A stretch of 59,379 bases of DNA, counting the filler, from Platydemus manokwari (Eukaryota), in NCBI GenBank assembly GCA_037951405.1. It is 5 parts of 5 records of this genome, joined end to end, with 100 filler letters (N's around TTAATTAATTAA, not from the genome) between each part and the next. Parts side by side here need not be neighbours in the genome. Positions count along the whole stretch, not along the records: positions 9,710 to 24,187 come from JBBMOY011452531.1; 4 more parts are not named here. One strand, given 5' to 3'. This document shows, in pieces, positions 17,805 through 18,158 of the stretch. Position 1 is the first letter of the stretch; the number at the start of each line of letters is the position of its first letter. Below the pieces are notes generated by a model that saw nothing but the letters and a program-made list of their open reading frames with translations, did no database searches and was not told the DNA's origin. The position numbers and the translations under genes were made by a program.

Positions 17805-18158
17805 ATGACTCAACGTCATTTTTATATGATTATGAATTTATCGACATTTTCTTTGATTTTCCTTTTTATTCTGACTTGTTGGTCATTTCCTGGAAGACAA
17901 TTGGATGAAAGATATGGAGATGAAGATCTAAAATCTGAAGAAAATTTTGAAAGTAAATTCATTCTACTTGGTTAATTAATAAAACGCTAAAATTTCATTG
18001 ATTCAGAGAACGACAAAAAGTTCTTCAGAAGTAAATGTGAACCAAAACAAAAACCTTGTCCAGCCTTTTTGATTGATCAATGCAGTATCTGCATCTTTTA
18101 TAGAAAAAGAAAAATTTTCAGTTGTCAATATACAGGGGAAATCAATTGCGTGTTTTGA
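17805..18158 (+). CDS. Two-exon secreted cysteine-rich prepropeptide, 99 aa (toxin- or defensin-like); exons 17805-17952 and 18007-18158
   Basis: 54-nt GT-AG phase-1 intron gives MTQRHFYMIMNLSTFSLIFLFILTCWS-FPGRQLDERYGDEDLKSEENFEKNDKK-FFRSKCEPKQKPCPAFLIDQCSICIFYRKRKIFSCQYTGEINCVF*. Confidence 0.7.

Follow-up and report, generated by a model that had tools for sequence, protein, structure and literature searches.

A candidate two-exon gene for a small secreted six-cysteine peptide precursor in AT-rich animal DNA

The candidate locus lies on the plus strand of a 14.5-kb piece (positions 9710-24187, ~26% GC, 0 N) of the analysed window, the whole stretch of DNA of 59,379 nucleotides along which all positions are counted here. 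The proposed exon 1 (17805..17952, +, 148 nt) contains a start codon, a signal-like hydrophobic stretch and most of an acidic part, and its last base opens a split codon (phase 1). It is separated by a proposed intron of 54 nt (17953..18006, +, GTAAAT...TTCAG) from the proposed exon 2 (18007..18158, +, 152 nt), which completes the propart and supplies a KK pair, a cationic six-Cys part of 45 codons (18021-18155, +, as read in the exon 2 translation) and, at its end, a TGA stop codon (18156-18158, +). Splicing would give a total of 300 nt, that is, 99 codons and the stop. This 99-aa model was put forward in a preliminary description of the window, and each of its coordinates was confirmed by direct reading and per-exon translation. 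As had also been claimed there, the plain ORF track overlooks it: the longest entry listed over the locus is a 56-aa ORF (17805-17975), accompanied by small TTG-started ORFs across exon 2.

Exon 1 opens with an ATG at 17805, and additional in-frame ATGs are located at 17826 and 17832. The motif TCAGT followed by TATAAAA (17796-17806, with TATAAAA at 17800-17806) overlaps the first ATG, so that the true start codon is uncertain; if the TATA-like motif serves as a promoter element, the start codon would be that at 17826 or 17832. Core promoter and polyadenylation motifs are present, though in DNA this AT-rich they carry little weight. The putative signal peptide (17805..17885, +), read from the translation and a hydropathy test, comprises 27 codons from the first ATG and 18-20 from the later ones, with a small-residue C-W-S motif just ahead of the proposed signal cleavage point. 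The hydropathy test looked for a 10-aa window with a mean Kyte-Doolittle value of at least 2.0 and zero charged residues; exon 1 has such a window within its first 25 aa, with small residues next, a property that chance ORFs in AT-rich DNA often have too.

An Asp/Glu-rich run follows the hydrophobic stretch in exon 1. The putative acidic propart of ~25 aa, with KK at its end, extends over 17886..18020 on the plus strand with the intron inside (coding 17886-17952 and 18007-18020). The exon-1 tail past the hydrophobic window has a net charge of -5 and exon 2 one of +6, the Lys/Arg-rich six-Cys tail being at ~+5 to +6, in agreement with the acidic propart and cationic mature part of the preliminary description. 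The six Cys residues are found at positions 10, 17, 25, 28, 39 and 47 of the exon-2 peptide, which reproduces the spacing C-x6-C-x7-C-x2-C-x10-C-x7-C; their number is even, and all of them lie beyond the KK pair, within the last 45 residues.

The proposed intron starts with a donor GT at 17953 and ends in the acceptor TTCAG at 18002-18006 (AG at 18005-18006), with a branch-like CTAA ~17-20 nt ahead of the AG. It interrupts the frame in phase 1, and two stop codons lie in frame within it, which bears out the earlier claim of a GT-AG intron with an in-frame stop. Its having been chosen by eye to bridge in-frame stops, together with a length that is a multiple of three, counts against the model. 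An alternative in-frame donor/acceptor pair (17882/18031) and one alternative acceptor are also available, and these choices drop the acidic part or the cysteines.

The nearest gene is a kinesin-13 (KIF2/MCAK/Klp10A-like) gene on the minus strand (21974-24187), which is truncated where the piece ends and is convergent with the candidate at a distance of 3.8 kb. Its exons were placed at ~23915-24003, 23661-23863, 23327-23534, 22395-22507 and 21974-22343 (all on the minus strand, with the stop in the last), supported by a Pfam Kinesin match (8.6e-19) and by KIF2C and Klp10A as the best solved relatives (~1e-27). The kinesin introns measure 51, ~126, 819 and 51 nt with GT..AG ends, and exon and intron GC contents range over 0.28-0.40 and 0.16-0.26, respectively. 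Given the two introns of 51 nt, the proposed 54-nt intron fits the short-intron class of this genome. One kinesin donor is the apparently weak GTTATT, and the 819-nt intron holds two adjacent direct-repeat pairs (22759-22867 and 23040-23135, 76-78% identical, ~270-280 nt spacing), which suggests an old local tandem duplication.

No other gene-like feature was found between 10100 and 21900. Scans of the piece for tRNA genes and Rfam families gave no matches, repeat scans around the locus detected no repeat or transposon structure, and Pfam analysis of 15 other open stretches gave a mariner-type HTH fragment, distant from the locus, as its sole match. The latter, a stop-free stretch at 9821-10087 (+) beside the piece edge, encodes a Mos1/mariner transposase HTH domain (Pfam HTH_48, E = 7e-9) and is apparently a mariner-type DNA transposon fragment. 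Simple-sequence arrays are located at 9710-9784, 10772-10847, 14083-14139 and 23592-23659, their types being (TAA)25 at the piece edge, TTAT/TTAA, (AT)n and, within a kinesin intron, a TAA-like one. Strongly acidic 25-aa windows occur in three stop-free stretches between the candidate and the kinesin 3' end (20763-20897, -; 21574-21705, -; 21743-21874, +), more than the Markov model described below predicts, and none of the three has a Pfam match. A bacterial or organellar origin of the piece was rejected given that the neighbour is an intron-bearing animal kinesin, and a gene on the strand opposite to the candidate was likewise rejected, the antisense ORFs having no family match and folding poorly.

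All searches with the candidate were run exon by exon, with one exon per query. Pfam searches with each exon at E up to 10 gave no family and only a meaningless RING-finger fragment (E = 1), while a PDB sequence search with exon 2 at E up to 10 returned nothing. Two word-index searches for proteins, one using a longer stretch around exon 2 and the other the 56-aa ORF of exon 1, were blank, within a length window (30-98 aa) that would just miss a 99-aa product. HMMER analysis of exon 2 against 1.84 billion representative proteins yielded no relative; the single listed match (P0001), a protein of 898 aa with a repetitive sequence and without any matched stretch, was rejected. Metagenome contig scans with exon 2, as well as with the last kinesin exon, found nothing, and in an exact look-up two window ORFs were not on record. 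The preliminary description had proposed a search for paralogues; tblastn of each exon, confined to the 14.5-kb piece, detected none.

The reach of these searches can be gauged from the kinesin neighbour. A search with the kinesin exon ORF returned 1,684 kinesin-13 fragments, including exon-level ORF calls from eukaryote assemblies, of which none was identical to the window and the best were 78-86% identical. As the best matches reach only this level, the source genome and its close relatives evidently lie outside the searched collections, and the blank results therefore mean that no kin was detectable in distant taxa, and are silent on congeners and on the annotation of the source. The closest available relative of the kinesin exon is an equally AT-rich metagenome contig (L001; ENA ERZ27256860, contig k141_573388, 568 nt), which has an intron position and an unusual GTHRPFR motif in common with the window exon and probably derives from a related animal lineage in that sample.

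Compositional analysis gave GC contents of 0.284 for exon 1 and 0.322 for exon 2, compared to 0.241 for the intron, 0.243 upstream and 0.227 downstream, although open frames in AT-rich DNA lean GC-richer anyway. A codon-position score, for which 324 kinesin codons served as the training set, showed no coding-like bias in the candidate: among 60 chance stretches its exons came 11th and 15th, and all kinesin exons scored higher. Single-sequence AlphaFold2 modelling of the exon-2 peptide predicted three beta strands and no helix, with a best mean pLDDT of 73.3 and a pTM of 0.46, the other four models being at pLDDT 44-62. The antisense translation of the exon-2 DNA, folded as a single control (n=1), gave a pLDDT of 55.1 and a pTM of 0.26, a contrast that lends mild support to the candidate. 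Structure prediction followed by Foldseek had been suggested in the preliminary description as a further check, and did not come out in its favour: against the PDB, the exon-2 model, itself of moderate confidence, had no match at E <= 0.001 and a best E = 1.0 with unrelated proteins.

The order of parts in the candidate is a familiar one. In spider venoms, a signal peptide, an acidic propeptide, a basic motif and a cationic Cys-rich peptide make up antimicrobial and neurotoxic precursors, with proparts of 6-30 aa reported in venom precursors and processing at KR, RR or at Arg in position -1 with Glu at -2 to -4 (PMC6832493). Antimicrobial peptides of Hydra are similarly described as having a signal peptide, a bipartite charge and a cationic C-terminal part and as being taxon-restricted (PMC10945409), and many venom and antimicrobial precursors are taxon-restricted without homologues outside (PMC6832493, PMC10945409). 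Compared to such prepropeptides from spiders, cnidarians and other invertebrates, the candidate has the order of parts in common and is of similar size, with six Cys in ~45 aa; its propart of ~25 aa falls within the range of 6-30, and the negative charge of the propart offsets the positive charge of the mature part. Unlike them, it has KK in place of KR, RR or the Glu/Arg quadruplet, and has no sequence, family or fold match. Of the earlier reading as a secreted peptide precursor, the hydrophobic start, the acidic middle, the KK and the cationic six-Cys tail stood, being present and statistically unusual, while no family, sequence or fold match was obtained. The proposal that KK acts as the processing site fared less well. 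The pair is present and is the only one at the proposed processing boundary, but its choice is arbitrary. It is not among the sites that the review names (KR, RR and the Glu/Arg motif), and the Cys-rich part itself contains a stronger basic cluster, RKRK; the putative KK cleavage site is considered weak.

With the periculin, arminin and HyCWR types of Hydra peptides, the candidate has in common a putative signal peptide, a bipartite charge with a cationic C-terminal part, a Cys pattern, an AT-rich genome and the lack of homologues beyond the lineage. These Hydra peptides form paralogue families, whereas the candidate has no paralogue in the 14.5-kb piece and no similarity in protein searches, and HyCWR peptides are tryptophan-rich, whereas the Cys-rich part of the candidate contains 0 Trp. 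Like CS-alpha/beta defensins and knottins, the candidate peptide is small, cationic and putatively secreted, with six Cys that presumably form three disulfides. Defensins are characterised by pairing of a CxxxC motif (helix) with a CxC motif (strand), and knottins by a spacing with a CC pair. Neither CxxxC nor CxC was found in the candidate, which has CxxC instead, no Pfam match and a predicted model without a helix; nor did it show a CC pair or the knottin spacing, a Pfam or PDB match, or a Foldseek hit better than E = 1.0 for a model of moderate confidence. In the usual Kazal spacing the first two Cys loops resemble the x6 and x7 of the candidate; the following loops (x2, x10 and x7) differ, and Pfam (E up to 10), PDB sequence and fold searches gave no match to this family. 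ShK-type and other sea anemone toxin families gave no Pfam, PDB sequence or fold match either. NCR peptides of legume nodules and BCR peptides of aphid bacteriocytes come from small genes that are lineage-restricted and often unannotated, with the signal in exon 1 and 4-8 Cys in exon 2. This two-exon orphan plan resembles that of the candidate, a likeness drawn by description only between different organisms, as none of the searches brought up such a comparator.

None of the frameworks that were compared by reading has this Cys spacing, which also matched nothing in the Pfam, PDB-sequence and Foldseek searches. Judged from its sequence, the candidate is a member of none of the tested families, with a putative layout as in a venom or antimicrobial prepropeptide; if it is real, it would combine a familiar precursor layout with a Cys framework matching nothing in the searches run. 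In our reading, the earlier terms 'toxin' and 'defensin-like' are labels of resemblance and not findings.

Combining these analyses, we estimate at about 50% the probability that the locus is a real, lineage-restricted two-exon gene, predicted to encode a small secreted peptide precursor of ~90-99 aa in an AT-rich animal genome. It is possible, if somewhat doubtful, that two open stretches of AT-rich intergenic DNA are instead paired here by chance and yield no gene product, in which case the hydrophobic start would come from T-rich codons, the acidic stretch from a local GA-rich tract, and the intron from a GT and an AG bracketing stops. Each half alone is ordinary for this DNA. In 12.2 kb of gene-poor DNA of the piece we counted 60 stop-free stretches of at least 45 codons, among which the lengths of the candidate halves, 64 and 55 codons between stops, do not stand out; a stop-free 45-aa window with at least six Cys occurred in 13-17% of Markov simulations of the piece, and when the Cys-rich stretch was held fixed, 3.5% of simulated upstream regions gave a spliceable signal-like ATG exon. 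Jointly, the parts were rare under three null models. A complete model, defined by a signal-like start, at least six Cys in exon 2, an overall length of 70-160 aa and a GT..AG gap of 40-150 nt, arose in 0.9% of 1,200 Markov-2 simulated pieces, or 0.08% with a gap of 45-65 nt, and in 1.25-1.75% of 800 shuffles by 48-nt blocks, which preserve local composition. The layout with an acidic tail and at least six Cys, by contrast, appeared in none of the 1,200 simulated and none of the 800 block-shuffled pieces (0/2,000 together), and among 5,588 chance two-exon models a tail charge of -4 or lower was seen in 1.1%, and such a tail together with an exon 2 of at least +5 in 0.036%. In the real piece, exon 2 is the sole stop-free stretch with at least six Cys in 45 aa; seven signal-like two-exon models are present (~4.5-7.6 per simulated or shuffled piece), of which the six others have at most three Cys. 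The even number of Cys, all past the basic pair, the agreement of the gap with the genome's own short-intron size and a model confidence above that of the antisense control further argue against chance, whereas the codon-position score, which is that of chance stretches, and the lack of relatives, paralogues and family or fold matches are what chance would leave. The odds themselves call for caution. Acid-rich open stretches are ~3.5 times commoner in the real non-coding DNA here than under the Markov null, so that the simulated odds are somewhat optimistic; the tested features were partly picked after being seen, and the preliminary description was free to choose any striking pattern among many windows. 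The simulation and shuffle figures apply per piece, and genome-wide some chance cases are still expected: without the charge feature, ~1% per piece corresponds to hundreds of cases in a genome of 0.3-1 Gb. As a working figure, the full layout would arise by chance at ~1e-4 to 1e-3 per piece, which is low for one piece and non-negligible genome-wide. Within this piece, the whole layout is unlikely by chance.

Two further explanations concern what kind of gene, if any, the locus represents. That it is a proto-gene recently born de novo, or else a copy in decay, maybe transcribed and spliced, with a peptide function that is unselected or no longer selected, strikes us as rather improbable. The blank homology searches, the lack of coding-type codon bias, a low-complexity, GA-rich acidic part and the ease with which AT-rich sequence gives signal-like stretches, as in the simulated and shuffled pieces, would all be accounted for, but six well-spaced cysteines combined with a bipartite charge are unexpected in unselected sequence. 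The alternative splice pair 17882/18031, the alternative acceptor and the TATAAAA over the first ATG, which leaves the start uncertain, could also mean that the locus is part of a larger or differently spliced gene and that the 99-aa model is incomplete or wrong in detail. We hold this to be very unlikely, because the alternative splice choices cost the model its acidic part or its cysteines, a stop codon closes exon 2, and there is no other coding-looking stretch or Pfam match within several kb.

If the locus is a real gene for a secreted precursor, the reading that we favour, its transcript would be spliced at 17952/18007, and the signal peptide would direct the product to the secretory pathway and be cut near residue 27. 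The six cysteines may then pair into three disulfides within a small beta-rich fold, and the acidic part would balance the cationic charge during storage and be removed at a basic site, to release a cationic, disulfide-stabilised peptide that would act outside the cell. The cationic charge and the bipartite layout make a host-defence role of the antimicrobial type, in our view, somewhat more likely than that of a neurotoxin, inhibitor or signalling peptide; a toxin, inhibitor, signalling or reproductive peptide would, at this level, look alike. Paralogue clusters are common for peptide genes of this kind, and it is a point against a real gene that the candidate is single in the piece. The more far-reaching proposal, that the candidate is the founding and so far unique member of an undescribed disulfide-rich peptide family with a new six-Cys framework and a three-stranded fold, in a poorly sampled AT-rich animal lineage, is in our view unlikely; on that reading, the absence of homologues and of coding-type codon bias would fit an origin de novo out of intergenic DNA.

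Orphan Cys-rich peptides are a common type of find, and the layout here is a clean and statistically unusual one. If the candidate is not real, it would stand as a warning for DNA of ~26% GC, which readily offers signal-like starts and lysine-rich tails as well as open stretches that can be spliced, so that a convincing precursor layout needs transcript or comparative support. If it is real, it would be a gene for a small secreted peptide that escapes ordinary ORF lists and annotation by homology, of the lineage-restricted kind that ranks among the main sources of new components for host defence and venom and lends itself well to the study of gene birth.
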